Assembly: GCA_037379345.1 (NCBI GenBank)
Contig: CM074521.1
Coordinates: 35,922,704 to 35,986,703, forward strand
DNA: 64,000 bases
Origin: Perna viridis
Taxonomy: Eukaryota
Direction: 5' to 3'
Shown here: positions 15,805-63,898 of the stretch, in pieces
How the letters are laid out: each line of letters opens with the position of its first letter
Numbering within the stretch: the first letter of the stretch is position 1
Notes under the pieces: generated by a model
The model's input: the letters and a program-made list of their open reading frames with translations, nothing else
Databases searched by the model: none
Told to the model about the DNA's origin: nothing
Position numbers and translations under genes: made by a program

Positions 15805-15965
15805 GGATTACATAAATTAACTAAGTCTTTATCTGTGGTGTTAGGATTCAGTCCCCGTATATACAGGTTGGTTTTACTGAGGTCATTAGGCCCTCCACTC
15901 TGTGTGCTGCTTTGACTACTGGTGGTGTTTGGACTTGCCGCAGGCATGCTGCGAGGTGTGTAGGT
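15805..15965 (-). CDS. shep: Coding exon (161 nt, phase 0 to 2) of shep/RBMS-family RNA-binding protein: Ser/Thr-rich N-terminal region and start of RRM1
   Basis: Acceptor ttctttacag, donor CC|gtaagt. Translates [65 protein letters not shown] (RNP2) is the RBMS1/2/3-Shep signature, and [11 protein letters not shown] parallels vertebrate MAPPSPSTTSS. Confidence 0.96.
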
Positions 15966-18900
15966 CTGTAAAGAATAAGAAAACTTGTTGAATATCATGG
16001 CTTTTACAAAAAAATATATTAAGCAGAAAGCTTGAATGCATATTTGATACTATCAGTTATAGCAACAAGTCATTCCAGGCTTAAAGTTCAAAACCCTGTC
16101 AGCTCTATAAAAAATAATAAGACCTGTGGTCCAAACATGACAACACCCCAACAAAAATGATATAAATGTAACTTAATCTGATATACCAACAAAAGATTGC
16201 AATGTCCTACCAGGCTTAACAAAGCTGTAAGGTGAAGAAATAAATGTGTACAAGTCAACAGCTCATTCTAACCTATAGCATATACATTAAAACAAATAGC
16301 CTAACAAAAAATACTTAGTTCAATGGATCAAACAGGTGTTTTCATTCATTCTTTCTTCAAGATCAGAGACAAAAATCCTATACCAGTTTGGCCTTAGAGA
16401 AAATGTTGATAAAGTACAAGTCGATTACACAGGTAATGTATACACAAGGTAAGTCACAGGTACAAAGGTAACTTCAAAGGCAAAATTATGATAATCTGAT
16501 TAAAAGATCAAACTAAAGCTAAAAAATCACACCACAAAATGTCAAGTGTTTGCATATCAATTCATTTACTTACATTTAATCAACCAAGTTACCTTCACCG
16601 ATTTAATTAACTTAAAATAGCAGGTCAGATGAAGTAAGGTTAACTGTAATTAACAGAGATAAATTCTTAATTATAATTCATGGTATCAACTTTAAATTTT
16701 TAACAACTTCATAAATAACTGGAGCTCAACAAGACATAGGATATTCTTGGTCAGTACTTTTATTCCAGTAATTATTTACATATTAGCACATGTAGTTATG
16801 GAATTCAAACATCCACTGTATGTATGGTAATATGAAGGGAGTAATTTATAATAAAGCTTCATACAAGATCATATCTATCAAATCATGACCTTTCAAAGCA
16901 ATGAACAGTCATTTCAAGGCAATTTTTTTCAGAATTGATTTCACTTTTTGTTATTAAATTTGTCTCCCAATTTTGACAAGCATTGGATGCAAGTAAAATA
17001 ATGAATAGCAATTTCACCCTATTACAAGCTTGGCTAGGCAATGCCATAGAAAACCAACTCAGTTAAACGTTCTATTACAATAATTTGTGATCAGCGACGA
17101 GGACGATTACCAATGCCATAATTAACCATCCAAAAAGCTGATCACGGGTCCTACCGTCGCTTACAGTAATGTCAACCAACTCTTGTGATTTGCAATTAAA
17201 TTGTTCTTCATGCGTTTATTTGCATATTCAATAACATGTCTAATCAGTGTACATCTATGGAGACCTTTTATTGACTTTTTCTCATCCAAGTACCAGATTT
17301 TCTCAAACATAAAAATTTTACATAAGAAAGGGAAATTGCACTTCTCTTTATAAACATGTCATTTATCAATGCCAATATTTCTTTCTATTTCTCCCACTTC
17401 ATAGAACTCTACACAAAACAGAAACACTTTATTTAAAAATATAAAACCATTACATAAGATTATAAAAACTTCATTCTTTCAACACAATATATTTAAAAAA
17501 AAAAAAAAAGAAAACTTGTATTTCAGCACAAAATCATAAATGACTGAACCACAACAGGTGTAATTAATTACAGATAGAACTGTTTTAGTACCCCCTTCCT
17601 AGGAAGGACCTTAATACCATTACAAACATATTAACCCACCATCAAATTTGTTTTTTTGCAATTAGTGTATCTAATCAATAAGTACTCAATGCAATATAAG
17701 AATAACTACTCTCTCTTCAGATGAATAGATTTCCTTGCCAATTCACATGTACATGTATCATAATGATAAAAAAAAGCCAAAGTACTACTAAAGTATAAAC
17801 AGTTGTACATTGTGGAAAGTGTGTTATGGTAGGAAGAATGTAAACGTTTGTATAGGACAATGCATATGTCAAAGTTTTGGTTCAGAAATCATCTATATTC
17901 CATAAAATAAAAACAAATCAATTATAGATCAGTCTGACCTCATTATTCATAGTGTTTTGACAATGAAATATATGTAACTTTAATGATAGTTAAATGTTAC
18001 ATAAACAAATTATCAAAATATTCTTGGAAGATTTCAAATCAAATAAAAGATTGACATAAAATAATCCAAATCCACATACCTTGTATGAGAAGCCAAGAAC
18101 CAGAATAGAGACTGACCTATATGGAGTTAATAGTACAATTATCTCCAACTATGTAGAGAATTAGTTTTTCATTGGACATGATGGCTGCTGACAGTTTAAT
18201 ACCTTGTCAAAACTTTGACAGCTAAATACCACAAAACCTCATCAATAACTTGATTATAACTGGAACATAATGCTACAGACAATTGTTTATAATCATTTGC
18301 ATTACGTCCTGATTGGGGGCTTTATAATGGAAAACCATTCAGTTTTATATTGGCTGATTTCTCAATGAGCCATTTTATGGCCATAGTCTCAGCTTGCAGT
18401 TAAGTTTTATGTTTGTTTCTGAATTCATTAGCAATTAGTTTCACACAGGTTCATATAAATCACTGCTTGTCCATTGACCAGATAGGCTATTGTTGGCTTT
18501 ATCCTGGAAACAAGCAATCAACATGACTAATATGTAAGATTCAACATACAAAAGTATGAGAACAGGTCCTAGTTTTAAAAAAAATTATATATATATATTC
18601 AAACCAACTGGTTGTTGAAGCTTTATACACAACTTGATAACATGCTCAATGTATCATATTAATGTGAATGCAAAAAGTAAAATACACTCCCAAAACATCT
18701 TCAATCTCAATAGAAATGCTTGTCGTCTCAACACCAGCGTGACCTAATATCTACTATAGAACCATACATGGACAAATATTCTACTTGTACATGACATTTA
18801 AACATCATATCGGAAAACAAAGTGTCATCCAAAATTACTTTTTTTAAGTAAGTAGGTCTCCCTTATCAGAAAATATGAAAAAAATATATATTAACAAATC

Positions 18901-21900
18901 TTCTTTAAAATATGATGAGTCGAAAAATTTACAGTTCGGCGCCAGAGGTCTTCAGTAGAGGAATAATATAGATATAAAATCATAAATTTTTCTTCCACCA
19001 GCCCCAAAATAATTTAACCGAGCCTAGACCTTACCGTGTAAATAAATCTTAAGACCCTTTATGACTCTTAAAGCCCATATACATTAAATTGTTTGACCTA
19101 AATATTTATGTTGTTCATATTCTCTGATAAGGCGAGATTTACACTGCTTTACAAATCTCACTGACAAAACTGTCTTTTATCACAGAAAAATATGACATTT
19201 TGAATTTGATAAATTTTTCCTAAAGGAGTTGAATTGTTTGTATGGTGTAAAATGGTCCCCAACCTACACATTTGGGTGTATTAAATTGTAATTCTTGTTT
19301 CATATCAATGCAACAGTGATTCAGATATAGTGAAATGTAACAAGTTTACCTGAGTATAGTTAGCCAAACTATATTTCTATAAGACAATGTGAGGAATCCT
19401 GAAGAATCAGGAACTAAGTTTTATATGTAACAAAATTTTCCAGAAAAAAAACAACTAAAGTGCTTTTAATTCAATTATTTTAATCCAGCAAAAATACAAA
19501 AAGCTAAAAGCAAAAAATAAAATTGTAGCTTTAACAACCAAATATTCAGTTGGTCCCATTTACTATAGAAAATTCATTTCCCTCTGGGCAGACGAACAAC
19601 TGTTAATAAACTTCGGCTGTTACATTGTAAACATTTATGCAAAAAACTCAATAATCAACTTTCTGATTCATTGATACAAAAAATTACATATATTAACAGT
19701 AATATTTCACAATGAAAGTCAAATGTAGAAAAATAGACTTACTTGTATCGAAAGGAAGAAAAACACCTGTTAAATTTTGTATAAGACACTCCCTCCGTAG
19801 GTGAAATCAATGCTATATAAAATGTGTATAAGATTCTCAACTATTTTGATGACCTAACTCCGCTCCACTAACCACAAGATGTAAAGGATGTATTTAAAAA
19901 TGTCGCACTACTACTTAAAATCTTCCATTTAAGTTACAACATATATCTGTAACACCACTACGATCAAAAGTGTTAGGTTTAATAATTACAACGGCCAGAG
20001 AATATTAAGGTCATTGATTCAAGATCTCCGTGATTACTTGACTAATCTTACTAAACACCACAAAGTAAGGCATTGCTATCTGGTAAATAAGATTATTCTT
20101 TAAGTCATTGAAAAAATAAATTCCATTTAAAAATAGGCAGTGAATTGATCAGAATTGTACAATTACCAAGGTAAGACAGGTACTGGTATTTTTCTCGTTT
20201 AATTGGATGATGAATGGTGCAAGGTTGTAGAATTCTATATAGAGACGTTTATAACATAAAATAATAGAAATTAAAATGGGAAAAAAAATCCCCAGAATCA
20301 ATAACTATAAATGGTGACAATGAACTCTTATAATGTGAAAGTGTCTTCATTATACAATTACATTCTATGAATAGTCTGTGAATGACTGATTTTTTATCCA
20401 CTATTTATTTAGTAGAGAGAAAGAGCTGTAATATTGATATTGTATTCAGCATTATTTCAGTATGATTATGACTAATAATTAAAAGAAATCTTGGTATAAC
20501 ATTTCTCTGATATGACAAGCTACAGTGACCTTTGAACTAACCACATTACCTAATGGTATTCTAGTACCAATAGAACAGAATTTTATAGTTTTGCAAATCT
20601 GCATTAAATTTCTACAGAACCTCATTTGAAACAAACTTTTTAGATTTTAATTAGAAACCTTCCCATATGACCTAACAAACTCACCTTAATTTACCATTGA
20701 TAAATGTATGATATGATGTGATATGGTACTACACATTTATTTTTATTATAATTTTCAATTAACTTTGTTTGTGGGGGGTATAACAAGTGAGTTTTTTTTA
20801 TGAAAAAATAAAGTTACATCTAACTAGAGAAACATTCTTCGTCCCAGAGTGGATGTATAAACATATTAATGGGTACAAGCCTACCTATTACTTAGTGGTA
20901 ACATATACAGGTTGGTAGTACATATTTAACCTATTTATGACAGGTGATCTATGACCAAATAAGACATTAATTTGACATTTTACATCACAAGGTTGGTGTA
21001 TCTATATATATACATGTAAAACATTGACACTTGTAGGAGTAACAAAAAGAAAACTTCTGATGTATACCACTCATTCAATGATCCACCCATCATTTTCTAA
21101 CGATTTTGGAAAAATATGACCCTGATAAATTTTAGAGATTATGTAATCACAGTGGAATTGAGTTCTCCTACTTGGCCTTGCTTTAATGTTTTTAGCCGTG
21201 GTACTTAAACATGCAAGAAATATCCCTAATTCATCTCATCGCTTCATCTTTCTACTCTTGCTCAGCTGTGTGTTAAAAAGACGATTTAGATTTTCTCATC
21301 GTTTTTAACACCCACTTCTTACATTACAAAGTACATGCAGGCTTCAGCAGAGAAACCACAATTTCCTTTGATATCTAAATTAAGCAATCGTGGAACAAAA
21401 ATGAATCGTATCAAGTGTCAAAAAGCTATCATCATTACATGATTCCTAAAAAACATTTTTGCCTGTTACAGAGCTGTTTTGTATATTAACCTACACTATC
21501 AAACTGATCTCTGTAATGAGCTTCGCAGGCTGTAGATAATTGCTAATGGCTTTGTGACTGAAGAAATCTTTAGAGAGATGATAAAAATTATCTGCTTATT
21601 TTTCCAATTTAATGCAATCCAAGAATGACTGATCTTTTCAGTCTTTCAATGTCCATGTTATATTACCCTCTTCCTCACTTTGTCCTCAGATTCGTTTCTA
21701 TTTGACAGAATATACTCTAGAAATGTCTCTGTAGGCTATTTATTAGATTTCGAGAATTTTTTATTTATGGTTATGACTATTATACTAATTATTGGTTCTG
21801 CCTTGATCGATATAAGAATTCAAGAAAATCATTGATAAAAGTATTTATTGTACATTAAACAGGATACATGTTAATTACCATGGCTGCTGCATCCAATTCA

Positions 21901-22419
21901 ACCACAAAACAAAGATAATTAAATTAAAAACTATTGAATTTCACATATAGATAACATTCAACTTTTAGATACTTACTAAGATGAAATTGTATCCATTGAA
22001 CGTTATTGGCCACACAGTGAGATGGTAAGTATACTTAAGACATGAAGTATCATATGAGAGTTATTGTATACATGTAGAAAGACAGGTTCTATTTATGAAC
22101 AAGGACATGAGACATACATGTACATGTATCCTATGGTCAATGACTCAGGTCTATACAGAAGTACAAACGGTAAACCAATTTTCACAAGTGATTTATTTTC
22201 GCTAATTTCGCTAGCAAGATAAAAATGAGAAAATAAATCACTGCAAATAAGTTCCTTCATATGGAACCCTGTTACACCTTTAGTTTTAGTTGCAAAAGTA
22301 AAAATTTTCAAAAGACATGGAGTTGAGTATCTGCAAAAAGAAATCAGTTTACACATGAACTCGTGGATCGTTATGGTGTATCTATCTGCACCATGAAAAC
22401 TGATTTATTCAACGGGTCA

Positions 22420-22703
22420 TAGTTTTCCTTTCCGCGTTTGTCTACCCCCAACTTGACTTTTTATGAGCAACTCGGTGGGTGTTTCTAGAAAAGCAGAGGA
22501 TGCTTACCCTACCGGTGCACCTGGGCCATGCTCCCAGTTTTTAGTGGAGTCTGAGTTGCTCATTTGCTTTTGTTATTTTGCATGTATGATTTTAGTTACT
22601 TTATGTTCTTTGTTGCATATGTCTAATTTCCATGTCTGGTCTTTGTCCCTGGATTACATTCTTTTGATTACTGCTATAACCTTGGTTCCCTTGATTACTC
22701 TTA
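22420..22703 (+). mobile_element. Interspersed repeat fragment (GATGCTTACCCTACC-GGTGCACCTGG family), copy 1
   Basis: Aligns with an inverted second copy near 60 kb and with the unit of the 54.2-kb array. Resembles an abundant bivalve repeat from memory; class not determined and ends approximate. Confidence 0.7.
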
Positions 22704-25450: not shown

Positions 25451-25624
25451 CGTATTCTGACGAAGAAAAAATGTTTTCACCGGGTTAAAATTCGTGTATC
25501 TCCTGAATGACACTTGAAGAAATGATCGGTATTTTACTACAGTGGAGCGTTGACATAAGATATAGAACCGTGTAAACAGGTGACATGATAGACATGCCCA
25601 CACAAATCTCAAGAAAATAGACAT
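25451..25624 (-). CDS. shep: Candidate alternative first coding exon (58 codons, MSIFLRFVW...FFLRQNT)
   Basis: ATG at 25624, frame open to a consensus donor ACG|gtaagt in phase 0. Seven CpGs in 25451-25570. Confidence 0.5.
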
Positions 25625-27465: not shown

Positions 27466-27520
27466 GACTACCTGATACATGTATCCTAAATGGACTACCT
27501 GATACATGTATCCTAAATGG
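27466..27520. repeat. 27-bp tandem duplication containing the palindrome GATACATGTATC
   Basis: gactacctgatacatgtatcctaaatg, two copies. Confidence 0.85.
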
Positions 27521-32313: not shown

Positions 32314-35300
32314 ACACTTAAGGAGATATAAGCTGGTCAATTGACACAAGCAGCACATGTTTTTACTAAGCAAAAGTAAAAAAGATAACTGAACATTTTA
32401 TGAGATGTTATGAAAATACAGAACTATTTATCACTAGAGTAATATATTGAATCAATAATCAGTTCAATTCTCAACCAACCTGCGCCATCAGATCTAAAAG
32501 CATCCATTTATATTTTCCTTTTATACTTTTTCCAAATATATAACAAATTGGCAATACTTACATGAAATATTTAACTACTGACAAAATTAGCATCCAATCT
32601 CATGTAATCTCCAAAAACCATCAAGGATTGAGTTGACTATAGGATATGACTATATGAAAGATGATTACACACTTGAACACTGTACCAAATCAACAACCTG
32701 TTGTGAATCATCCATGTAAGTGTGTGTAAATCCGGCCACAACTTTCTTACGTCAAAATAAAAAGATTACAATCGGTTGGAAAGGACAGTAAGAAAAGGAC
32801 AGGACGAAAAGGACGGTTTCTAGTAATTAAGATTACATGTCTTGTAGAAATGTGATACTATTCCGATAATTTTATGTTTCTTGTAGAAATGGACTACTAC
32901 TATAATTCTAAGTTCTATTTTGTTATTATTTTACATCTAATGAGTAAAGAAAAAAAATATTACATGATATCATCAGCCAATAAACACAGGAGCTTTTAAG
33001 AATGATTTACATCAATAAAGATGTTCCGTAGTTACAAGACACAGACTTGACTTTCATCAGTCGAGTTGATGAATGTATAATGTGTCTTTGGCTAGAAGTC
33101 TTAGGAAATATAATTCTATCCTGAGAGAGAAATTCCCAAAATTCCCTGTCATGTTGACAATAAATCTTTAAAAAACAAAACATTCATATCATTTAAGACC
33201 AACATTCTCTACAAGTTTGTGAAATCTCTCACAACCTTGGTGCAGCATGCACATGTGGTATTTGGTTACACCACCGGCTCTGTTCTACATCAAAGAAACA
33301 ATATAGTTGGTTATGTAACTAAATCGAGATTTGTGGGAAATTATATAAAAGGTGTTTTATGAATCAACTTTAAAGTATGGCAGTGGAAAGATTAAGTTAT
33401 ATAAATTGATGCATTTTAATCATGATGCTATGTGTAGTACTGCACTTTGGATTGTTAGTCATCTGTAACTTTCATGACACCCAAGAGCCCAAAGAAACTC
33501 ATAGACATTTATTTGCATCATGGTAAATTCTTGAGAAATTCTAGAGCCACTGATGACTTCATATGAGATCCATTTCTTTGATCGCAAAAATATTCGAGAC
33601 TAAATATTGTTCACTGAAACCAGAACTGGTACCAACATTGTAAGAAATCATGTGACCATTCTCAGAGGTCAATAGAAGACAATCTGTTAACAACACACCT
33701 CATAGGAACAAGCTATTAACTGTTGTGTTTATAAGGTCAAGGTTACATTCCTTCACAGAACTTTATGAATCATCTCAGCAGAAAAAAAAACTTAATGGAT
33801 TTTCAGGAACCTGTGCAATATCTCAATTAATTGATAAGAATTAGAAGGAGTTAGCAAATACCCTGTTACCATTTGAAAAGTATGTCATGGTTTTTAGTAT
33901 GGAGATATTAAGATGAAATCTTTCCCAAACAACTGTATGAATATGCAAATCAAGTTTACAGTAACATTCCTAGTTATTTCCCACTGCAATCATGGCCAAT
34001 CATATTGCATCCATTTCTTTCCTCTTTCCCTTAAACGAAAACTAAGAATATTGATACATAACTAAAAACACCCAGAATATTACATGTACATAACTTAAGA
34101 TCAAAGACTGGATAAATTGGCTTATACATTAATGGGACGGAAAAGGAAATACTCTATTATAACTGGTTATAAAACTGAATAACTATGTGGTGACTATATA
34201 TGTTTCAAGTTTAATTAAAGTAATGAGATGCTGGACAATTAGAAGAAATATAGACTTGAGTCACTTCTGACTATATTCATCAAATACAGATAGAAAAGTG
34301 GGCTTCCCCCATTAGAAAAATCATCTAATGAAACACTTTAATAATATGTATATTATTTAAATGATCCAACTAGAGGATAACACAATACAAACACAGGAAA
34401 CTACATCTCAAAATGAAACTTGCTCAATACCACCTCTCATTTTTAACAACAACAGAGGAAGTGTCAGCTGTACTGGTGGTTAGGGATAAACCCATAAAAT
34501 TGATCTGTTCAATGTAATTATAGCTGTAAAACTACCAGGTTACATACCGTAATTATTCAGACCAGAATTTTACCAGAAGAGTTAAACCTGAAGTTTGTGG
34601 ATTGATGTGGAAATTTATTATTCTGGATTCTATTTTCATGCTACATTAGTACAAGTACTTTTAGAAACAAATATTGATGATTTTTTTTCGTGTACTGACA
34701 CTGTATTGGCAAAATATTATTAATTAAAGCTAACCAAGTTCGGCTCCATATTGGCAAAGAATGGAAGTTTTTATAAACCAAATGCTTAAGGAGCACTCTG
34801 CTGACCATGATTCCTCTGGGAAGTCTTGTTCTATATAAAGATTGTGGCCACAGTAAGAAAAAAAAACACTTGTTTAAACATCACAAGATCCATAATGTAT
34901 TGCATTTGACACCATTTAGAGACATGCTATAACAGAAGGCAAGTTCTCAGGCTCCAAAACAAAAAAGACAAAACTTGTTGAAAATGGAAACAAACAACCT
35001 GATATTAACAGTTACGGCCCAGCCCTCCAACACTTCAGTGCAGCATGGAAAACAAAAGGAGCCATTTGTTACCTGATCCTTTACCAATTCTGGCTTTAAT
35101 ACATCAATGTCGACCATTTCAGACTTTCATTATAATAGTCATCATTTATAAATGATCATTTGAGAAACATGAGTCTAATTCATCACAATCAAGTTCCATT
35201 TAAACAATGACAATACAAAATATTTAGTGACTAAAACTGCTTTTATGATCCACTGTGAATGAACAATTCTTTCTTGCTTTTGTTTCATGGAAATGAGGTG

Positions 35301-38300
35301 TTCTAATGTATTATTGACTTTTGGTTTTCATGAATATAAAACTTCTCCCTGACTTCATTATTCCTTAGGGGAGACCTTACGCTTTAAATGAAAAGACTAA
35401 AAAAAAAGGTCAGAGTTTTTAAAAATAAAAAAAAGTTTTAAAGTCACATTTTTATCTCACTTTTTATAATTCTAAGAGACAGATTGGTCCATATAAATAT
35501 TTGATTAAAAAAAGGTTCACAATCTACTCTTTACAAAACAGTAATTCATTTATACTTATCTTCCATTTTATTTTGGATGCACAGTGGTTTTTTAGGGTAA
35601 CCACATTAAATGGCTTGATATAGTTCAGAAACTCTGTAGATCATTGAGATTGCAGCATAAAATATCAGAAGGAAGAAAGATAAAATTATCAATGGGAAAA
35701 CATGACTACTTATATCCATCCAGTTGCTATCTTTCATAAACAACTTCCTGAATGAACAAACATTTTTCTCATTGCACTCCCCGTTCTACAACATCCCTTC
35801 TATGGACAATTATAATCCCATTGCATACCCCAATCTTGTTATGCTCTAAGCTGTGTACCAGGGTGCCATAAAGCCTTGATTTACATTGTATTTCTCCAAT
35901 ATAATGTGACATTTTGGCATTCCATTAGTAGGGAAAACATGTTATGTAGTACAACCTGTAACTGTATATAAACATAGACTGTACATATATCAGGACCTGT
36001 CAAATATGTTTTCATCAGGAAACAGGGTCATATCTTTTCCCTCCAAAAACACATTGTGGACTGATATACTTTTTATGTAACCCAGATTTATCTCAACTTG
36101 AATTTCTATCCATTTTAAATTGCTGCTTCCTTTTTAACTTTTTCACTTCTGGGTTGGAGAGGGTTGGAGAGGGATATTTAAAAAAAACAAGGAAATTCCC
36201 AGGGAGCAGTATAAACAAGACTTAACTGATTTATTGATAAAAAATTAAAGATTTTATAATGCTGATGTCTGTTTCCTGACAGTTTAATCAAAGACAAACC
36301 TCTCCCATTAGCTGAATATTATTTAGACTTGAGATCTTTCATTTTCTCCAACATTTAAAACATTTCCCTCCCTCTTTGACATGCAAATATTTAGAAGATT
36401 CTCTGTAATCAAAGCCTTGGCTCTGGTTGTTAAGGATATACAACATCAAATAAAAACAATTTCTGTAGTGTTCTCTAACACAGTGTGAATGACTGGTTGA
36501 GTTGATTAAGTTTCCACGGTTTTTATGGCACTGTTTTCTGATTTAACTTGTGTTTTTCATTATACTATTAACTGTAAGTTAATTCATCAATAATTCAACA
36601 GAAAAAAAGGAACTGATCAGTTTTCCCTAGAATTGTTTTCATCACTTAAGTAGACGTTTCTCTGATGGGAAATAAGATTCTGTTTGAACAATTAGAATAC
36701 TTCTTTATGCTTTGTTGTACAACTGCATGTTACAGAAGCCTAAGATCTCTTCTTTATTGGTTTTGTCAGATTTGCAACTGTTGCATCTAATGTGAAGTTG
36801 CCATTGATTTTTAAGACAATGGTCTTTAGTCCCTGTGATTACAGTTTCTTTAATCTTTTCAGATTATTCCAATTTAGTTCATATTCAGTAATTTCTGAAT
36901 GCTTTATGAATCTAGAGCCAATTCAATCTTTTATTAAAATGCCAATACAATTTACCATTCATTCAAAATTAACCTGAACACTTAAAATTTTGTCTAATTG
37001 GTCTTGAGAAAAAAAAATAATAAGTTTTAAAGTACTTAATATCACAAGATAATGTTTATAACATTGATCTATTTAAGTTATTGGAGAAGAGGCAACTGTG
37101 TCAGAGAAAATTACAATCAAACAGGTGAATCACATCAAAAGAAAATTGACAAGGTTTTTATTGATTTTCCAAATATTAGCAAAATATGTTATCAGTTTTA
37201 ATACATACCATTATCTGAAGAAAAAATCCCAGTAGAAAACTGTTAATTTCCTCTGTTCAGTTGAGGTAATTAGACTTTACTTAACACTATCAAATTTTGA
37301 CTAACACATACACAAACTTTCTAGGTCACTTAGATTTGAAATTGTTTATGCCCTGGTGTACACACACATCTGCCTAGGAGGAGTGTAGTGAAAACATGTG
37401 CTCTCTTCTAGATGACTGACAGTTCCTAATCTCAAGTACGCCAGTCATGTGATCAAAGATGTACATTTCATTGATTGGGTCATGTGACTTGGGAAGTTTA
37501 GTACAATATAGTTATTGTATTTATTGATCTCTGTGTTATTGTCCCCCAAATCCCTAAATGGGATAACAAAATAAAAAGATGGAAAAATCAATCGTTTATA
37601 ACAATTGCCAAGATTAAAGGAAAAATAGATGGCAAACAGTAGGAAAAATTCTATGTTCCATTAGTCAAGATCCCTTGAGCATAGATCTCCATCCAGCTGT
37701 TTAGAAAAAAATATGAATGTCATAAATAAAGTATTTTAATCTTGATAAATGAAAAAATATAATATTCTATGATGACATCAAGAACTATTGGTCTATAGTG
37801 ATGTAAATTCTGACAAAATATTTATTATTTATCATAAAGATGTTCAACCAGATCAATAAAAACTCTAGCATTAAACAATAAATAATGAGTTTTATTCATT
37901 TATATAAATTGCCACCAAAATTTAAAAAGATAGCAGATTATAGAAGGGATCAATGTTATAAGATTTATAATTAGAGCATCTTTCTATCTTAGGATATAAA
38001 TAATTAGCATTACTCATATTTATCTGAGTTATCTCATATCTATGTTTGTGATTTTAATAATATGTAAAGTAATCAAAAAAGATATTTCTGCCAAAATAAG
38101 ATTTAATATTACATCATTGTATGAATTCATGAATCCAGTAAAAACAAATGGAAATTAGTTTAACAATATACAACATCAACATGACAAAATTATTATAAAA
38201 ATCTTAATTTTAAATACTAGAGGTTGTTTGCTAAGTAAAGTTCCCTACAACCAATGTCATATTACATGGTAAGCAGTTTTGATATCCTGAATACCACTTC

Positions 38301-44725: not shown

Positions 44726-47700
44726 CAAGAAGGCAAGTTGAATTCTTTCCAATCATAAGCCAAAGAAAAGGTGCACAGTTTTATTATTAGTACTTCCTTT
44801 TCCAGGAGGAGAAACTGCGTTTGCTGCCCTACCAACAAGTCTAAGCAATGATGTTTTTCCTCCAAAATTAACTTTTCAGATTAATGCAATTATCCTTGAG
44901 TTATCTCCCATGGTTTGACAATTAAAAGCTCTTTGAGAAAAGAACCACACACAGTTATAGCTCATTAATGATGTAGGTAACTTTTATTCTGCTATTCATG
45001 ATTTTCAAAAAGATGCTTCATTAGGAAATAAAACTCATATTAACTGCATTGGTGAATGATGATTTAAATACAATAAAACATTTCTCTTAACAGAAATCAA
45101 TGTTACATTTCTTCAACAAGACTTTAAAATATCTTTGGTGATGCCAAATCTGGTTAAAACTTTCTGAAAGTTTTCATTGAGATTGCTGAATGCCATATCA
45201 ACAAAGGTAGATCTTATTTGAACTGATCCTATTTCCATGTCAACAGAGGTCAGACCTTTTACTTACAAAACTACTGGTACTAATAAAGTACAGTAAGTAA
45301 ACAATAGTATAGCTCTAACTGAAGCCAAGAACTGCATCCTGCTCTAATATCAACATTTTTAGGACTATATTCTTTATAACCTTTTTGCCCTTAAGAAGTC
45401 ATAACTGCAAAAAATAACCTTTCATGTAACTTCTCTTAAAGAAATAAAACTAACAAAATCAGAGCAATACATCACAGATTATACCAGCTTAACTCAATCT
45501 TCAACAAAAGTTTACAATCTTCTACGCTTACGTGTCAACTTAAATCCATCTCCGGCTCCTTGAGGGATTAAAACCATCATCCCTATTTCTACTGAAGACG
45601 TAGAATTTGCATTCATAATTCATAACCTAAGAATTCATTGTAATGTTTTAACCTATTTTCGACTCTTTTTTTCTATTAAATTAAAGGAAATTGAGCATAT
45701 TCTAGGAATACTTGAGTTACACATGGACCAATGCCCTTTATAGGAGATTATATTATAGATCTTCACTTAATGCACTATACCATATGCTTGAGATGAGTTT
45801 TCAGGGCCATTATTGGTTATAGCTAGTACTGTTACCCAAGGGAACCAGAACAGATATTTCTACATGAGCTGATCCACAATAGGATAATGATGACATCTTT
45901 ATTCAAGTTCCTTTTCCTGTTGATGTTTTCTACATTTGAAGTATTTCGTATTCCATTTACCACATCAAGCGAGTAACCAGCTTCCTTAACTTATACTACC
46001 AACCTAATGAGGCGACTAAATCACGTTGATTTTAGCAAATTATTTAATGTGGTGAATAATTAGACAAAATGGAAAGGACTTGACTCCTCTGTGTAATAGT
46101 ACTAAACAGTTTTACACTAAGGTCCTCATGTTCAATGAATAAAAAACTTGTAATTACCAGTAGGTGAATTCTTTTCAAAATGATTTTTGATGGGAGACTT
46201 CATCATGGCCAGTTTATCCTGTATGACTGACGCCATGATAAAGAAACTAGCTCTTTGAGCAAGTCCACTGTTAAGCAAACTTTCTACCTACTTTTTTTTT
46301 TTTTAAATCATGCATTTTTGTTTTTATTCTCCAAAATAAAAAGTCACAAATCCCCTGTCCCTTTTCTTCATGAGGAAAAATCACCATTCAAGAATCCCTC
46401 CTCCCTAATGGTGTCACAGAAGAGGTCCATACATAATTGATAAACCAGTGGAAACACACAGAACAATTTACCTGACTCTCAATAGGCAGTTTCTGTACAG
46501 CAGGAATATTCATGGCAAGTTTATTGGGAATCTGTCAAGAAATATAGCTTGATACAGTACAGATTAAAGGTACATATAGAGGATGAAAAGAAGGTCTAAT
46601 AAAGTTCTTCAAAATCGAAGTCTGTTGCATATTCTAAAATAAATAAGACCACTTGGATTTCCTTTGTTTTCATAGTCACAATCACTGGACTAAAATGTCA
46701 TACATGTAGCCAGTGATATGATCTAGACAATAATCAGTATGTGGTACCCCTTTTGGACTTGAAGTTTTAATCCATGACTTGACCTCAATCAACAGACTTG
46801 GATTGTGAACCTGATTTCACCCCCTGTGATTAATTTCTCAATTAAGAATTCTATACAATAATATGTTAATTATATAGATAATAGTATTATATGTTTTAAT
46901 TATAAGAATGAACTACATGCTGAATATCTAATGAAATGTTAAAACTCTGTGTAATGGATTGATATATAACAGTTGTATGTTTGTACATCATAGAGTACAT
47001 TGTTCTGTAGCATGATACATTGATGTGTTTTTCTCTGTAAGTTTTTAAGTAAAGAATAGATAACTAGGGTTGAGTGCATTTGCATGGAATCAGTTAAAAA
47101 TAGCCTTTAATAAGAAATAGCTGTGAAAATAAAACAAATTGGTTGCACTTGACATTTATTGTTAGAACAGTAGTAACAGCTTGTATGGCATGGAATATTT
47201 TACTCCTAAATCTTATTTTCTGAAAAACTGGCTTTATTTGGGGATATCAATAACAAAGATCTTTCTTAATAGTCAGATGACCTGGCATGGCAGATCGTGT
47301 GTCAGAGCGTAATGCAAATTACATAACCAGTTCAATTTTCATAAATATTAGGAGAAAATTTGCAAATAATTAGATTTTTTCTACAAGTTAATCACCAAGG
47401 CTGGATGCAGAATTTAGGCAATTAATCTTACTTAGATAAACAACCACCACCTTGGGTGAAATTCATTTGCATGTATTAAATAATTCTATGTGTATTTAAC
47501 AAAGGAAATCCCTTGAGGATCAGAGCACTATCAAAAGGATAATTTTTGTCAAAAGTATCAGCCAAATAAAGACCAATGTTACCCTAGGGTTATTAACATG
47601 TGAACATCCTATAGTAGAATATATGATAATATCCCTATCTTGACAATATTTTTGTATGTTTTCAATGGCAGGCTGTTTAGTTTCTATCTTGTTATCTCTC

Positions 47701-48950
47701 AAAATACCAAAATTAAGTCACTAAATTATGGTATCCATCGCAATAATGACTTAATCTCCCCCCCTTTTTCTGAAAATTGAAGCTACAGCAAAGTTAAAAA
47801 TTCTCAAATACAGACTTTGTTCTCTTCTATAGTTGATTTAGGACAGACATGATGCACATTATTTTCACAAAGTTGAACCTAAGGGGTTGTTGAAATATGT
47901 TTAATGGAGAAAAAAAACAGAGTTTTATGCTACTTAATTTGGTACTGGGTATTTTAACTTCCTAAAATAGAAATAGCACTAATGGTCTGGATTCTAATAT
48001 AGTGGTCTCGATCACTTGGTAACGTAAGTGTTTAAAATTAGCCTCCTAATGAAAAAAAATGTATTTCACAGAAACCCAATCTACCATTAAATAGTTCAAT
48101 TTGTATTCAACAGTGTTTTTTCATTTAGGTTGAAAATGCTCATTGTTCCATTTAAAAACACAATTAAAATATCAGAACTGAATTGATTTTATAAATTCTA
48201 CACAGGGGTAAATATTTTGTAATGGCTTTATGTTTGAAATTTACAAAGGAAGGGGGAGGGTGTAGTGTATGTTAAAGATAACCCTAATTCCCAAAAGTGT
48301 GAAAGGTGGGGTTTAAATACTATCAGTTAATGAACACATATTAATTAGTCCTCCACCTGTTAGGTCATGATAAAATCTTGTGACCTCTGCTACAGTTCAT
48401 ATACTACAGAACAGGTGAAATAATTTGGTAATTAAGGAAGAGAGATGACCTTTAAACCCTTATTTGTCAACCCAAGGTCTGAAAGTAGCATTTAAACATT
48501 AAAATTCAGTAAAAGTTGTGGCAAAGGTAAATAAAGGAATTAAACTTGTGATAGCTATCATTTTAATGGTAAATCATTTATCATTGTCTTGTCCATGTAA
48601 TGTTTGTACTCTATGTCAGATCAACAAGGATATCAAATTCTATTTTTACCAAACACTGATTTTTAAAATGATGGATTTCTTTCAAAACTTATCACAAGGT
48701 AAACCTAATAACTGTAAAATTATGCATAAAAATTTCGCACAAACAAGATAAGCTAAGCAAGTATTTAAGAGTAATTTAGATGATAATTATTCTTATTTTT
48801 TATACAAATTTACCTTAAATCAACTTACAATAGTTAAATCCTGTTCTATCCCTTCTTTTTTTACTTTGACACACCTGCAACTGTAAGGGGTACCTGAGGT
48901 AAAGCTAATGTTTGTTGTTTTTGCTATCATCAAATTACGTAGTGACCTAC

Positions 48951-49019
48951 CTGAGAATATGGATGAAAACGGTTTGCTTGGTTTGCCTCGTTCAAAATTC
49001 TCAAAACTCGTACTTCCAT
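48951..49019 (-). CDS. shep: Candidate alternative first coding exon, MEVRVLRILNEANQANRFHPYSQ
   Basis: ATG in good context (ACAATGG), 23 open codons, phase-0 donor CAG|gtaggt compatible with the 15965 acceptor, in-frame stop further upstream, local CpG enrichment. Confidence 0.65.
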
Positions 49020-49900
49020 TGTCGTATAACTTCCATATATATTAGAAATGTTGTCTTCTTCACAACTCAAAATGTAGCGTACATAATAAAACAGTGTATG
49101 TTTACAGAAATCCAGAAGTTAGAACACCGTTTTATAATCTCAGGTTTTCAAATATTAATCACTGTCCTGTTTGAGACATTCTATCTCTCGATAGTTTCCG
49201 TTTAAAAGGTGAAAAGACTTGTGGACCGTTTCACTGTCATTTAATTTCGTATAAGATTTTTATCAACTTTGAGGTTTAGTTTATTCTTATTCTGATCCGC
49301 ATGACGAATCACGTCCCTTCAGAACGCATCAGAAACATTTAATCCAGAAATGTTTTTATCCCTCAAGCCAAAATGGAAAATCTTTTTGTCACGCTGTCTT
49401 GTGAACAATGAAGTGGCCTTAAACTGGTTGTATTCAATCTCTTTTTCCAATCAAAATTCCTCGTAGTATTACCATTGGACAGTCAACAAAGGGATATGTC
49501 CAGAAAAGGGTATTACAGCACTAATTGCTATCTGTATAAAGTGTACGATAGACTGTGGACAGAAAAATCTTTTGTCGAGGAAAGGGTCAAGGTATTGATT
49601 CTGATCCTCAAATCATTCTCAAGTATTGTTCTTTCATCACATTCAGTTTATTACCTATGATTAAATGAAGCCTCTAATGTTTTAATTTAATTATGTATCG
49701 GCAAATTTAATTGGTTAGTTAATGCAACTTCGATCAGGTATAAAGCCCAAATTCATCAATATTTTGTCACATACAGCTTCTCCCTTTATCAAATTAACGG
49801 AGCGCTTATCTTCAATAGAATAATATTTAATTACCCGACACAAATGTATTGACGAACTCTGATTGTCAACTAACATTGAATATTAAGATCAAGTCATGTA
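49020..49900 (-). promoter_or_regulatory. Putative 5'UTR/promoter of the 49-kb first exon
   Basis: About 16 CpGs in 48930-49400, with more up to about 49910, against a CpG-poor background. CCAAT near 49447. No clear splice acceptor upstream of the ATG. Confidence 0.5.
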
Positions 49901-56172: not shown

Positions 56173-58012
56173 AATGAATCCCACCATACAGCATACCTAC
56201 AGGAAGAATGAATCCCACCATATGGCAAACCTACAGGAAGAATGAATCCCACCATACAGCATACCTACAGGAAGAATGAATCCCACAATATGGCATACCT
56301 ACAGGAAGGATGAATCCCACAATATGGCATACCTACAGGAAGAATGGATCCCACCATATAGTATACCTACAGGAAGAATGAATCCCACAATATGGCATAC
56401 CTACTGGAAGAATGGATCCCATCATATAGTATACCTACAGGAAGGATGAATCCCAACATATAGCATACCTACAGACAGGATGAATCCCAATATACTGCAT
56501 ACCTACAGGAAGGATGAATCCCACCATATGGCATACCTACAGGAAGAATGATTCCCAACATAGAGTATACCTACAGGAAGGATGAATCCCACCATATAGC
56601 ACACCTACAGAAAGGATGAATCCCACCATATGGCATACCTACAGGAAGGATGAATCCCAACATAGAGTATACCTACAGGAAGGATGAATCCCAACATAGA
56701 GCATACCTACAGGAAGAATGAATCCCATCATACAGCATACCTACAGGAAGGACAAATTCCACTATAGGGCATACCTACAGGAAGAATGAATCCCACCATA
56801 CAGCATACCTACAGGAAGAATGAATCCCACCGTAGGGCATACCTACAGGAAGAATGAATCTCAACATATAGCATATGTACAGGAAGGATGAATCCCACCA
56901 TACTGCATACCTACAGGACGGATGAACCCCACCATACAGCATACCTACAGGAACAATGAATCCCACTGTAGGGCATACCCATAGGAAGGATGAATCCCAC
57001 GTTACGGCATACCTACAGGAAGGATGAATCCCAGCGTACGGCATACCTACAGGAAGGATGAATCCCACAATATGGCATACCTACAGGAAGAATGGATCCC
57101 ACCATATAGTATATCTACAGGAAGGATGAATCCCACAATATGGCATACCTACAGGAAGAATGGATCCCACCATATAGAATACCTACAGGAAGGATGAATC
57201 CCACAATATGGCATACCTACAGGAAGAATGGATCCCATCATATAGTATACCTACAGGAAGGATGAATCCCAACATATAGCATACCTACAGACAGGATGAA
57301 TCCCAACATACTGCATACCTACAGACAGGATGAATCCCACCATATGGCATACCTACAGGAAGGATGAATCCCAACATAGAGTATACCTACAGGAAGGATG
57401 AATCCCACCATATAGCACACCTACAGAAAGGATGAATCCCAACATATTGCATACCTAAAGAAAGGATGAATCCTACCATATGGCATACCTACAGAAAGAA
57501 TGAATCCCAACATATTGCATACCTACAGAAAGGATGAATCCCACCATATGGCATACCTACAGGAAGGATGAATCCCAACATAGAGCATACCTACAGGAAG
57601 AATGAATCCCATCATACAGCATACCTACAGGAAGGACAAATTCCACTATAGGGCATACCTACAGGAAGAATGAATCCCACCATACAGCATACCTACAGGA
57701 AGAATGAATCCCACCGTAGGGCATACCTACAGGAAGAATGAATCTCAACATATAGCATATGTACAGGAAGGATGAATCCCACCATACTGCATACCTACAG
57801 GAAGGATGAACCCCACCATACAGCATACCTACAGGAACAATGAATCCCACTGTAGGGCATACCCATAGGAAGGATGAATCCCACGTTACGGCATACCTAC
57901 AGGAAGGATGAATCCCAGCGTACGGCATACCTACAGGAAGGATGAATCCCACTGTATGGCATACCTACAGGAAGAATGAATCCCACCATAAAGCATACCT
58001 ACAGGAAGAATG
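56173..58012. repeat. 34-bp minisatellite, about 54 units
   Basis: Unit approximately GAATCCCACCATATGGCATACCTACAGGAAGGAT, with an internal block duplicated at an 884-bp (26-unit) offset. Confidence 0.97.
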
Positions 58013-59934
58013 TGTTAAAGCTACTGTGAAGAGTAGTTGCTGAAAAAACTGATAGAAAAAATTGTTACAGCTGGAAACACAAACAAGGATAACACAGTTT
58101 ACCCCCACCATCCTTCAGAGATGGGATACAGATATCAAGGATCTTCTGAATCTCAGTAACATACTTTCAAGGATCACATTATTATATTAAAACAAAATAG
58201 TTCAGGACAGTTGAGCCTCTGAATTCTTTATAGGATTTCTTATAAACAATGTATACCAGCAACAATGTATCACATTTTTCTTTAAAGTTAAAAGGTAACT
58301 ATCCATAATTGATCTAAACATGTTATAACATGAAGCTGTATGCATTGTTATGTTGGGTATTTTGGAAGTTGAAATCTGACAGCAATTCAAGTTGCTAACT
58401 ACGTCTATATAAAGCAATGAACCAAAACTGAAATCAATTCATTCATTGAGAGTCAATCTATTGGGATGAAATTTGGACAAAAAGATGGTTCCACTATACC
58501 ATTCGACATTGCAAAGCAAGTGTCTCACTGCTCCTGATCATACAACAATCAATAACCTTGTTTTTTAATGGTCTTGAAAATGATAACCTTCATTTAATTA
58601 AAGTGCTATATTAAATTCTAATAATTAAAAAGGGTATATAGTATATCATGTGGGTCAAATGTTCTCATATATCTATGTATTCAAATTTCATTGATCCTTT
58701 AGAGATATATTTTATGAATTTGATGAGCTCTTTAAACTAGAACTATTTTCATTTACAGCAATATTCAGTATAATAAATCTTGTATTGACATTTCTTTTTG
58801 CTTTAAATGAAGATTCATTTCAATCTTTTTCAATACCCTTTACCACAATATAATTCATAAGGCACTGAATTCTTGAATCTTTACAACAGAGATTATTCTA
58901 AATTTAAATTCAACACCCTACATTAAACCAAAAGTACACATCGTTAAAAATCATTTGACCATTGAGTTGTAGATGTTCAATAAAGGTACAAAGATAAAGA
59001 GTTGTAATTCGTCCTGACCAATTTCAATCTGGTTCCTTGTTTAAATTATCAGTAGAATGAATAAGAGTAAATATTGACTCATATACTTAGTGAGCCTATA
59101 TGGTTGTAGTTTATAGTTGTATAGTAAACGGACAAACATTTACATTCTCCTGCTATGGTAAATAAAACTTTCACTGGTGATAGGAAATATAACTCTCTAT
59201 AGAATTCAGATAGGAAGAATTAATAAATAAAGTTAGATAGCGTCACACCCATTGCCAAAAATGGCCTTGTGAATTGTCAAGACACAATATAATAGGCATC
59301 TGATAACAGGGTTTTACATTTTTTAGATAAAATTTCACACAGTGTGGTTTTAGAACAACGATGTATGTCTTAAATTTTCATAATTAAACTCAAACCTGCA
59401 CTTAAACAACAATAAACTGTACTTTATACATCACTTATTAGAATTACAAATTAAGTTTTGGATAGTAAGATAAGCTGAGATTACTCCCTTTTTTTCAAGG
59501 CTATAGATATTGGAACCAGGGACACCCATGCTCACATACTTACATCTACAGAGATAAAGTGTAAAAACTGGCATTTTAAAATTTTTATCAGCATTAAACA
59601 TCAGTCACTTTGTTACAAATTCAGTCAAAAATTCAACAAAAATCAATAAAGGTTTTCTTATTGATCGTTGAAATACAAAAAAAGATTGCATTCTTAAAAA
59701 CATGTGAAGTAACTTAGGGAAGAAATAGAAGCTGTCTATCTGAGTTAATTTATCATATTTGTATCTCCATGTTACTTCTCCATGTTTCTCCTCAATAACA
59801 TTATCAATTATACGACTTAGTTATCTTATAAATACTTCCTACTACTGATTGTCATTTAAGGGAAAATATCAAAATACAAAACTTACAGAAATAATACAAG
59901 TTTTGGTATGCTGTAAACATGCTTCAAGGTAAAA

Positions 59935-60121
59935 GAATGTTCAAGAGAACCATGAATGTAGCGAAAATGAAAAGAATATAATCGAGGGACAAAGACCGGA
60001 CAGGGAAATTAGACACACATTATAAACACCACAAAATAACCAAAATAATATGTATAAAGCAAACTCTGATTGCACTAAAAACTGTAAGCATGGACCAGGT
60101 GCACTGGTAGGGTAAGCATCC
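59935..60121 (-). mobile_element. Interspersed repeat fragment, copy 2 (more diverged)
   Basis: Minus strand ggatgcttaccctaccagtgcacctggtccatgcttacagtttttagtg matches 22498-22547, and similarity continues through ggtctttgtccct. Confidence 0.7.
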
Positions 60122-63100
60122 AATCCTTTCATAGCAGCATAGGAACCAAATACTATGAAGTTGGGAAATCCAAAATGAAGTAGTAAAAAAAATATCAAAA
60201 CAGAATGTAAAATCCAGAGAAGTTCTTCAATGTGCAAGGAATGAAGCCTCAGTGTTCTAGAGCTCTTGAATTAGACAGGGAAAGTTACATTTGAAAGATC
60301 TGTTGTAGTGAAGTAATTTTCATGTATATTTTACAGTATAAAGCAGATTATAATTAGAATTGTTGAGCACTGGTTAGTATACAAATTAATTAAATCAAAG
60401 TACTCATGTACTGAATCAAACTAAAGCCACAATCATTGAAATAAACCATGCCCTTAGATACATGTCACTCTCAAATAGCTACATTCCTTGATTGATAAGC
60501 TATACAGCTCAAGTCCTACAAGTTATCACTTAGACACCTGTGTGTCATGTAAAAGCGCTTAGTTTCTGGGCACCTAATTCAAGAGTCATGCCCATACATT
60601 AACATAAACACCAAAGTCTTAGAAATAAACAGTTATTAGTGAGGTTTGTATTGTATTGTTGTTAATACACACCAAATTTAGTTCGCAGTAAAAGTGGTTT
60701 ATTGGGTTTGTTAATTGGCGTAAATAGCACAGAATTAAATATGACAAATTAAAAATACCCATTAAGTGGACCCAACTATCTGTATTTGAATTTTAATGGG
60801 TCATGCCAGTGGACTATTTTCCTGCGGTAGTGTAAGATAATTTCAGATGCTAACAGGCTTTACAAATCTAAAGGCTCTGGTGACTGCTATATCTATTCTG
60901 ATCTTCAATCTAAATTGATAAAAATCAATAGTTTGTCAGTAACTCTCATGGAAGACAATGTGAAAACCATCTGGTACTCTTATGTACTTCCAGAACAACA
61001 TTTCTGTTGTAGGATTAGTATGTGGAGAAAAAGTGGTATGGTCAACTTTGGTTTGTCAGACAGTGGGAGAACATCATGAATATATTTTAATATGCATGAA
61101 TTTGAAGATCAAAATTGTGATATATTTCGTTGTACAAAGCAAAAACATGCAACATGTACAGTAAAAAACATATCATTGTACCATGTTTGGTCATTAAAAG
61201 CAACCCACCAGAATTCAGTTTTCAGTGTTGATGCCCCTGCAAGGAAGATCACATGACTAATATGATGCCTATCCTTATGGCAATAATTCTCATGTTTCCT
61301 TACTTTCACAAAGTAAGACCGAATACTTGTAATTAGAAATATTTGAGAATACTATAAGAAAGGAGTGGGTGGGATAAGAACTATTAATGGGTCTCAAAAG
61401 ACACACACTGTAAAGATACATATGTTTTTGTTGATTAAATCTCACCTTATTGATGAAACACGACTGTCATGAAAGTCAAACAGTATCTTATATTTTGCCC
61501 AAAGGACCTGCTATCATTTTCCAGATTTAAAAAAAATAGTTCATTTGAATGTAGGTCTATTAAATTCTAAACAAACATATTGACTTTTCTTGGTGAAAAG
61601 GAATGTTTAGGTGGAAATCTCAAGAAAATTATTAGGAGACTTTTTATTGCCACTTAATAAATTGCAGGAATAAGGTTCACTGCACACTTACACAATATGA
61701 TACATTGTCATGCTAGGTATACTCAAACTCATACTGCAAGTTGATATCTGACATTAATATAAAGGCACATACCAAATTTCAAATCAATCCATCAATTAGG
61801 GTTTAATATGAATATAACGACATTTATAGTGACATAATAAAAGATGGATGCAGTTATGGACTGATAAACAAGGTGACTGCAATATACCATCCACTCCTAG
61901 AGTATAGTTATATCATGGAAGTTTAATGAAGGAATGAAAAACATTGGAGCATTGACATTTTAGAAGCAATGCTCAAAGAGACAGATTAAAGTAAGTTTTA
62001 AAATCCCAAGTTTGTTAGACCGAACCTTAAAACTAACAACAGTTTAATCAGACAGGGAATCATATTGCTTCTAAGAATGTACTAAAGGTTAAAGACATTG
62101 TAGTTCTCTCTAGAGGTTAACCTTATATGGCTAAGGATCAAAACATCACAGTATAACATAGACTGGGGACGGCGTCTGATTTAATGAGGGAACAGGATAC
62201 ACGGTATTGAAGATGTAATAATGCTAGCATAGACAACATATTTTCTGTTTTATTCTATAGAGACGAGGACAGCCATTGATGTAGGAGACTAACATCAATG
62301 GTGAATCTTAGAACTTCAACGTCTTTAGGCTAAATAGAAATAAAAACTGATGTGTGTGCATGCGTGCGTGCGTGTTGAAAAAGAAGGGAGATAATTGTTA
62401 CTACTTGTACATAAAAAATACATTTAAAGGCAATGTCACCATGCCAATTTCCAATTTAAAAGCAAAATCTTCTACAAGAGCAAATGTATTGATCGAAGGT
62501 TAAAGGCTGAAACAGATTAAAACAACATGAACAATAATTCCTAGAGGCATATACAACAACATCTTTCCAAAAACACAATGTCATATTTCACTTAGAAATA
62601 TGGATAATTTTTCATCCTCAGCAAGTCATCATAGCTGTAAACCACCGATTGTAAACCAGTGATGACTTCTGTTTATTGATTATATCACACTAAAGAGGAC
62701 ATCTATCTCCATGGTACAATCTATCCCACAGCCATCGAAAAAGTTTACAAAATGCATTTCTTTTGTTACAAAGGAGAAAAGTGAGAATTCTTGTTGTTAA
62801 AAGATAAATCTGAATTCTTCACACTGCACTATGGAATCTATTCAAAACATTCATTTAGATCATGCTTTGAAAAGTGCAGAGAATGACTGAACAAGAAAAC
62901 TCAACATCACTGTCAACCTCTATTAGGCAAGAACAAGAGATGCAATGATTTTAATAGAATTTTATAAGTTTCTAGATTTATCATGATGTGACAAAATTTT
63001 CATAGAAACCAACTAAAATTAGCTTGAAGGCCTAAATCATATGTGAATTTAGAAGTCACTTGAGTAAACAGGGGGTTGTTGTGTGACTAGGGGCAAAAAA

Positions 63101-63171
63101 AGTCACACGTGACCCTACCTGTATGCAATTTCAAACCAATCTATGCATCATAAAAATCTAGCAGTAAGAAC

Positions 63172-63438
63172 TACTACAGCCTATAAAATCCTTGATTAAA
63201 GGCCTCCAGTGAAGAGATACTACAGCCTATAAAATCCTTGATTAAAGGCCTCCAGTGAAGAGATACTACAGCCTATAAAATCCTTGATTAAAGGCCTCCA
63301 GTGAAGAGATACTACAGCCTATAAAATCCTTGATTAAAGGCCTCCAGTGAAGAGATACTACAGCCTATCAAATCCATGATTAAAGGCCTCCTGTGAAGAG
63401 ATACTACAGCCTATATGATCCTAAATCACTAGCCTCCA
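63172..63438. repeat. 46-bp tandem repeat, 5 units plus a diverged interrupted sixth
   Basis: tactacagcctataaaatccttgattaaaggcctccagtgaagaga; units start at 63172, 63218, 63264, 63310, 63356 and 63402. Confidence 0.95.
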
Positions 63439-63668
63439 CTCTACGCGTTGGTGTATTCCCAAATAGAGTGGGGAAACACTCTCGGATCAATGTGGGGTCT
63501 GAGAGTAAGCTAGCCCCTAGTAGGACATACTCTGAGTTCTTCAGTCACATATCCCAAAGGCTGGGCTTTGCTACCTCCAACTACTAACAGACATCTTCTA
63601 ACACAATTCCTGCAAGGGGCCGTCATGCGAGATCCGCAAGGATAGTCAAGACGGTATAAACCACCAAT
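63439..63668 (+). mobile_element. 230-bp structured retro-insertion within the last unit of a tandem array
   Basis: Flanked by direct repeats CTAGCCTCCA (63429-63438 and 63669-63678). Removing it restores a diverged 46-bp unit. Ends in a SINE-like tail gacggtataaaccaccaat. Confidence 0.7.
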
Positions 63669-63877
63669 CTAGCCTCCAGTGAAGAGAGCTACTACTGCAC
63701 CTTCATGACTTTTGACCTTCAAAGCTTAATTCATTAAACTTTAAAATTCTGTCTAAAACTAATAATGGATTCAGACCTTGGACAATGAATAAAATACATG
63801 TAAGCTAAAATCTGTTGAAGTATTAGATGTAACACATGGCACTATACTACAGAAATGAGATAGAAATATTTGCTCAC

Positions 63878-63898
63878 CTGATCTTCTTTGCCAACAAT
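63878..63898 (-). CDS. shep: Candidate 21-nt symmetric microexon (IVGKEDQ in phase 0)
   Basis: Long T tract plus ttgcag acceptor and strong donor CAG|gtgagc; length is a multiple of 3 with no stop in phase 0. Confidence 0.5.

Follow-up and report, generated by a model that had tools for sequence, protein, structure and literature searches.

Clustered protocadherin and UGT1A genes have variable first exons, each with its own promoter, that are spliced to constant exons, and these variable exons are paralogous copies that each encode a whole domain. BDNF-type genes have several 5' exons, each of which is spliced to one common exon, according to PMC7805101. For Drosophila alan shepard (shep), PMC3510032 describes one shared RRM region that carries different N-terminal domains, with isoforms C and E under a promoter of their own; the experiments described there test the insulator binding of three isoforms, not N-terminus-dependent localisation. 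Here we analysed a 64,000-nucleotide stretch of the Perna viridis genome (contig CM074521.1; G000:C11:35922704-35986703 in our numbering), which we call the window and which contains, on its minus strand, the 5' half of a two-RRM gene of the RBMS/Shep type. Our analyses make it very probable that this is the 5' region of a single RBMS/Shep-type gene of a mussel-like bivalve, with alternative 5' exons that are spread over about 118 kb and spliced to one acceptor at position 15965.

We mapped three stranded RNA-seq runs from one study (X21-X23) on positions 15500-16400 of the window and derived a 30-letter consensus for each class of loose read ends, the classes given being those among the matches listed. 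All mapped reads lay on a single strand, with a depth of 36-205 in the common exon that begins at the acceptor (exon A) and zero in all bins of 15996-16400. The acceptor reads ttctttacag/ACC on the gene strand (a slash marks an exon border). It receives no fewer than four different upstream exons, as four loose-end classes were found at 15965-15970 in each of the three runs (Table 1). An earlier model-made reading of this DNA from its letters (the sequence-only reading) had proposed that at least three independent upstream modules, and possibly a non-coding leader as a fourth, would join this same acceptor; the reads bear out the general layout, though not every detail of that list. The consensus strings of classes a, b and c each have one exact place in the window, beside a GT donor, and for each of them 0 of 100 shuffles gave a match. 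A paralogue was rejected as the origin of the junction reads because a genome search found no second copy of exon A. We also rejected median loose-end length as a hint to first-exon length (the 32562 class was shortest, at 31-42 letters), because the downstream class at 15805, which no transcript end limits, is also short (median 46-52).

Table 1. Exons and candidate exons of the RBMS/Shep-type gene in the window and beyond it. Class, loose-end position and read counts (X21/X22/X23) refer to RNA-seq junctions at 15965.
Feature	Position	Strand	Splice signals	Class; loose end; reads	Peptide and basis
Common exon A	15805..15965	-	begins at shared acceptor 15965, phase 0; ends AATCC/gtaagt		start of RRM1
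Non-coding leader, 3' end	32562..32591	-	CAT/gtaagt	a; 15965; 15/45/35	reads, unique exact match
Leader ending in ATG, 3' end	37209..37239	-	ATG/gtatgt	b (largest); 15966; 35/70/35	reads, unique exact match
Non-coding leader, 3' end	19743..19777	-	CAA/gtaagt	c; 15970; 14/14/16	reads, unique exact match, agreement 0.98-1
Internal microexon, 21 nt	63878..63898	-	gcag/ATT...CAG/gtgagc	d; 15968; 20/56/25	IVGKEDQ; reads and orthology
Alternative first exon, coding part	48951..49019	-	CAG/gtaggt		MEVRVLRILNEANQANRFHPYSQ
Probable cassette exon, 60 nt	46472..46531	-	cag/...CAG/gtaaat; phase 0 both ends		IPNKLAMNIPAVQKLPIESQ
Third module of the sequence-only reading	25451..25624	-	GTAAGT		58-codon ATG-to-GTAAGT open frame; unsupported, probably no exon
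Constant exon B	5824..5882	-			YGKIISTKAILDENTKKCK plus split codons; limits read from sequence
Constant exon C	5488..5580	-			GYGFVDF...QMAK, 31 residues, end of RRM1; sequence and tblastn
Mytilus-type first exon	L005:1783-1712				MLDNMLYLDSPYQLVPLSSLNQSM, ends in ATG
Mytilus-type first exon	L005:7991-7950				MFVDQRQPGLVYYT
NPAAYGSY exon	L009:2391-2221		phase 0 both ends		SRPNYNQ...NPAAYGSYAQVQ; 75% identical to Mytilus
Weak candidate exon	L010:5291-5229				E 0.14-0.28
ATG exon of long head	L010:9941-9843				MATNYSVMYSYPRQDHQSVSYQICADDVQNIYW; 78% identical to Mytilus

The three leaders inside the window add little or nothing to the protein. In leader 19743, the frame read back from the donor runs for nine codons without an ATG and then meets an in-frame stop, and leader 32562 has an in-frame stop three codons ahead of its donor and no ATG. 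The start for transcripts with such non-coding leaders would be the methionine at codon 7 of exon A (MPAASPNTT...). Leader 37209 is open for 16 codons, and its sole ATG is formed by its last three bases, in frame with exon A (M-TYTPRS...). Taken as functionless, these leaders would be transcriptional noise or cryptic starts in a long intron, which would suit their non-coding or one-residue content and an upstream sequence that is not strongly CpG-rich. We consider this highly improbable, however, as the leaders hold 278 of the 380 listed junction reads (73%, and 70-77% in each run), and the M-TYTPRS and MPAAS forms that they predict are annotated in three Mytilus species and found among unnamed mytilid transcript-derived proteins (12 of 38 mytilid proteins). 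An origin from repeats was rejected, because stretches of 500-551 nt around 19743, 25451, 32562 and 37209 each occur once in the genome.

Two further observations concern single leaders. The last base of leader 19743 is A in the reference and G in the reads of all three runs, so that CAA/GTAAGT becomes CAG/GTAAGT; the mismatch is a polymorphism or an assembly difference. An octamer, TGACGTAA, in the 32750 region, about 190 nt upstream of the 32562 donor, resembles the consensus of the cAMP response element and may be there by chance.

The 38 mytilid proteins carry 19 different N-terminal strings, assembled from these same parts, and together with the reads they confirm the earlier proposal that the 5' end varies while the RRM body stays constant. 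M-TYTPRS and MPAAS were each found in six of the 38, a long head in seven, and a long head behind another first exon (MSLKSL...) in one. M-IVGKEDQ and MLDMLY...QSM-IVGKEDQ account for five proteins each and M(M)FVDQRQPG...-(I/L)VGKEDQ for four, all three with or without the cassette; MEVRVL...HPYSQ was found in three, and two are partial (MSPAATPS...). Homologues of the Mytilus N-terminal exons are present in the Perna viridis genome (tblastn).

Mytilus RefSeq models resemble this locus in the common exon, the microexon (IVGKEDQ, 7/7 residues identical), the MEVRVLRILNEANQANRFHPYSQ head (23/23) and the M-TYTPRS and MPAAS forms; they also have a cassette of this kind and share the distal heads. 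Among the matches listed, their isoform names go up to X22 (M. edulis) and X15 (M. californianus). They differ in that exon A is 91-93% and the long head 75-78% identical, and in having two exon B versions against the one found here. This comparison is one of proteins. The many-exon 5' architecture is thus already known from the annotation of Mytilus and from descriptions of the fly gene. The suggestion that it formed an undescribed system does not stand, since the same isoform set is annotated in Mytilus. Our searches found no literature that joins Mytilus with an RBMS-like protein name, and the accessible parts of PMC6162566, PMC4390579, PMC10228280 and PMC11724274 do not mention N-terminal isoforms.

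Drosophila shep belongs to the same protein family as the gene studied here but differs in its heads, which were not alignable to the mussel short heads in the sequences compared. Non-human vertebrate RefSeq proteins also carry alternative heads (P0256 versus P0261 and P0258). As in BDNF-type genes, most of the classes that the reads support here (three of four) are non-coding or almost so; the difference is that some 5' exons here are coding and alter the N-terminus, and that a microexon or cassette can intervene before the common exon. Unlike the variable exons of the protocadherin and UGT1A clusters, the 5' exons here are mutually unrelated, short or non-coding, and combinable with internal cassettes.

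In the arrangement that we propose, each alternative 5' exon would probably have its own promoter; for the leaders, we infer that each is a true first exon with a promoter of its own, whereas the junctions, the strand, exon use and the orthology of the peptides are directly shown. Some donors join 15965 directly, and others reach it through the microexon and, judging by homology, the cassette. The resulting mRNAs would differ in their 5' untranslated region and in the length of the N-terminal tail ahead of the constant RRM pair. Leaders 19743 and 32562 would give no tail (start MPAAS), leader 37209 would give one extra methionine plus six residues (M-TYTPRS), the exon at 48951-49019 a 23-residue conserved head, and the exons past the window, through the microexon, short heads or heads of about 100 residues. 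Exon choice would mainly govern the place, time and efficiency of protein production, with a possible secondary influence on partners through the variable, disordered N-terminus.

A TATAAAA and CpG at the 99th percentile at the 48951 exon are an indirect hint of a promoter there. Several observations weigh against this reading. The 400 nt upstream of leaders 19743, 32562 and 37209 are not strongly CpG-rich (percentiles 86, 81 and 37). CpG density was set aside as a promoter proxy, being clear for the 48951 exon only. These leaders, each placed by a consensus of 30 loose letters, could have further upstream exons. For 48951 and 46472, the case for use in Perna viridis comes from orthology only. 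The class shares vary only modestly among the three same-study runs (18-32%, 32-42%, 23-30% and 8-17%; chi-square p = 0.058), and a Logan-contig run (X10) placed nothing on positions 15500-16400 of the window.

The fourth read class leads out of the window. Class d opens with 18 loose letters that match 63881-63898 as its reverse complement, and the peptide of this microexon is identical to its Mytilus counterpart. The sequence-only reading had taken it as one of several modules that all begin transcripts. It is instead internal, with its own acceptor (tttgcag/ATT), no ATG and phase 0. The letters past the microexon differ among runs (agreement 0.61-0.72), and two of the strings approach the ends of upstream exons (11 of 12 letters at L005:1723-1712 and 10 of 12 at L005:7961-7950); for a third string no place was found. 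The microexon is thus fed upstream by several exons past the window. Homologues have an N-terminal head of about 100 residues with NPAAYGSY, which was absent from the window by tblastn. Its exons in L009 and L010 lie about 52 and 70 kb past the window end. A search for protein fragments linking the upstream exons to exon A gave two matches, neither of them informative.

The largest CpG-rich block of the 184 kb examined also lies past the window, in L012 (about 144.5-149.6 kb in window-equivalent positions). It has up to 21 CpG per 400 nt and an observed/expected ratio of up to 1.85, lies 10 kb or more upstream of L010:9941, and may be a distal promoter of the RBMS/Shep gene or of a neighbour. 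On the other side of the microexon, in the intron just downstream of it, the sequence at 63437-63670 matches at least 43 other places in the genome at 69-90% identity and is an interspersed repeat resembling short interspersed nuclear elements. It overlaps a 'densely structured 230-nt RNA-like insert' noted earlier.

The peptide of 48951-49019 is identical over all its residues to Mytilus P0288, P0264 and P0266 and has its only match in the genome here; in P0288 the head joins straight to TYTPRS. The exon lies in the strongest CpG-rich patch of the window (48801-49600), with 14 CpG in the 400 nt upstream of its donor (99th percentile of the 184 kb; mean 3.2), and TATAAAA stands at 49136-49130, 117 nt upstream of its ATG. 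An upstream ATG at 49034-49036, in another frame and 17 nt ahead of the MEVRVL start, opens a 12-codon upstream open reading frame (ATG to TGA) that overlaps this start. The cassette at 46472-46531 matches the Mytilus cassette IPTKLGMNIPAVQKLPLDTQ, which sits between heads and TYTPRS, at 76% over 21 residues (tblastn, E 4e-7); this probable exon would also feed 15965. Junction reads of the 48951 exon, the cassette and the microexon would share one class, because the 48951 exon and the microexon both end in TCAG, as does the cassette. Hence the X21-X23 reads neither show nor exclude use of 48951; the low agreement of the microexon class is compatible with a mixture.

We aligned this head with those of other bivalves to see which part is kept. 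HPY is invariant in five bivalve proteins, at a constant distance from the TYTP exon border, and heterodonts have LYHPY (VLYHPY) or QYHPY (VQYHPY). In vertebrates, first exons end in ...YYYPHYLQTK or ...YYYPQYLQAKQ before SYAP or PIVP (P0261, P0258), at the same exon border. The conserved element of the head therefore appears, from these alignments, to be a Tyr/Pro motif. One could go further and see in the MEVRVLRILNEANQANRFHPYSQ head, with an [FY]HPY core that pteriomorphs and heterodonts share without change, a short linear signal of ancient origin that a transport receptor or partner recognises, such that choice of its CpG-rich promoter over those of the leaders would alter where the RRM protein goes or which partners it has; we think this rather unlikely. 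Another alternative, which we regard as a tentative possibility and do not favour, is that the heads act mainly as interaction or condensation modules of a disordered tail and not to direct localisation, with the non-coding leaders providing tissue- or stage-specific expression and translational control. It would fit the full identity of the MEVRVL head (23/23) beside 75-92% for neighbouring N-terminal exons, the fixed place of HPY, the vertebrate YYYPHYLQTK and YYYPQYLQAKQ ends and the richness of the long head in Y, Q, G and P. However, the likeness of the vertebrate and bivalve motifs is short, and this argument is built from sequence.

The sequence-only reading had gone another way, proposing that the choice of first exon decides whether the one RRM pair goes to the nucleus, the mitochondrion or the cytoplasm, through peptides that are short and charged, PY-NLS-like, presequence-like or absent. 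N-termini do vary on a constant body, and the MEVRVL head, perfectly conserved between Perna viridis and Mytilus, ends in RFHPYSQ. The consensus of the PY nuclear localisation signal (PY-NLS), a Karyopherin-beta2 signal, has a C-terminal R/H/K-X2-5-P-Y, and RFHPY fits this half of it in Perna viridis and Mytilus. Heterodonts lack the basic residue, so conservation concerns only [FY]HPY and not a PY-NLS. A literature search joining RBMS and PY-NLS gave nothing relevant and one unrelated match. For the mitochondrial label, the 58-residue peptide of 25451 has nine K+R and no D+E. This presequence exon, however, is found in none of the 38 mytilid isoforms, forms no separate read class and has an open reading frame of a size expected by chance, and the bulk of the listed junction reads comes from leaders that add no residue or one. 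We therefore judge address labelling by first exons to be very unlikely.

The three phase-0 modules listed by position fared differently: 63878-63898 is backed by reads and 48951-49019 by orthology, not reads, whereas 25451-25624 found no support. None of the 38 mytilid N-termini resembles the 25451 peptide, no tblastn match came from 26 bivalve and other homologues, so conservation of the exon in relatives was not found, and there was no Pfam match. The module has no loose-end class of its own in X21-X23, and a minority of reads from it could be hidden in the 15966 class, where agreement is 0.8-0.91. Its region has 8 CpG per 400 nt (89th percentile). As a chance control, we compared the gene strand of 15966-64000 with 100 first-order Markov shuffles. 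Phase-0 modules from ATG to GTRAGT numbered 3 at 10 or more codons (3.3 +/- 2.0 in shuffles) and 1 at 40 or more, the 25451 module itself (0.33 +/- 0.60). These counts lie within the shuffled range, so a reading of modules from splice signals alone does no better than chance. GTRAGT sites in this interval number 17 on the gene strand and 13 on the other, and of the six real or likely donors besides 25451, four are non-strict (GTATGT, GTAAAT, GTAGGT and GTGAGC).

The identity of the gene follows from its constant exons. It has two tandem RRMs with the RNP motifs of the RBMS/Shep/MSSP family (DPTNLYI.NLP and RGVGFARME), and the best-matching proteins are named RBMS1/2/3-like or alan shepard. Among named proteins, the nearest are Mytilus isoforms called 'RNA-binding motif, single-stranded-interacting protein 1/2/3-like'. 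Exons were queried one at a time, and full-length queries were whole database proteins. Exon-by-exon identity to the annotated Mytilus gene is 75-100%, lineage-specific heads included, and the two genes are orthologous; exon A was compared with the Mytilus RBMS-like proteins by tblastn. No full-length protein of the same species was among the best 120 of two protein searches. Loose ends at the donor side of exon A (15805) read into exon B in all three runs (agreement 0.99-1), and exon B is identical to Mytilus P0204 in 20 of 20 residues. The RRM2 exon lies outside the window, past its start, in L016 (Pfam RRM_1, E 2.9e-14). Across the window, G+C is 32% and CpG observed/expected 0.24, so that the sequence is AT-rich and strongly CpG-depleted.

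In Mytilus isoforms, exon B is present either as YGKIISTKAILDENTKKCKG or as YGHIVSTKAIIDLSTSKCKG, the two versions being mutually exclusive. A tblastn search of the window found the first version only, and the reads of the three runs join exon A to the first version only. After the QMAK of exon C, the frame stays open past the donor as VGI... (5479-5487). Lingula P0014 has QMAKVGNQQEED and Dreissena P0185 has QMAKVQIQQEQD as counterparts in the linker, and these sequences give comparative support to an alternative downstream 5' splice site between RRM1 and RRM2. The same splice site bears on an earlier note at 5452-5487. Elsewhere in the window, at about 56249-57851 on the + strand, recurrent tblastn noise (PPYSIPTGRMNPT...) at regular spacing suggests a tandem repeat.

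As a calibration of what letters alone can tell, reading splice signals got the architecture right. Of the modules it picked, one is a real internal microexon, one is a first exon that is both real and conserved, and one is probably false; it missed the three leaders with the most junction reads. The function of the heads is hardly studied in the literature searched, and the perfectly conserved HPY head is the piece most worth an experiment. The locus shows that a 5' end with many alternative heads is a lasting feature of the RBMS/Shep family, in flies as in molluscs and vertebrates.

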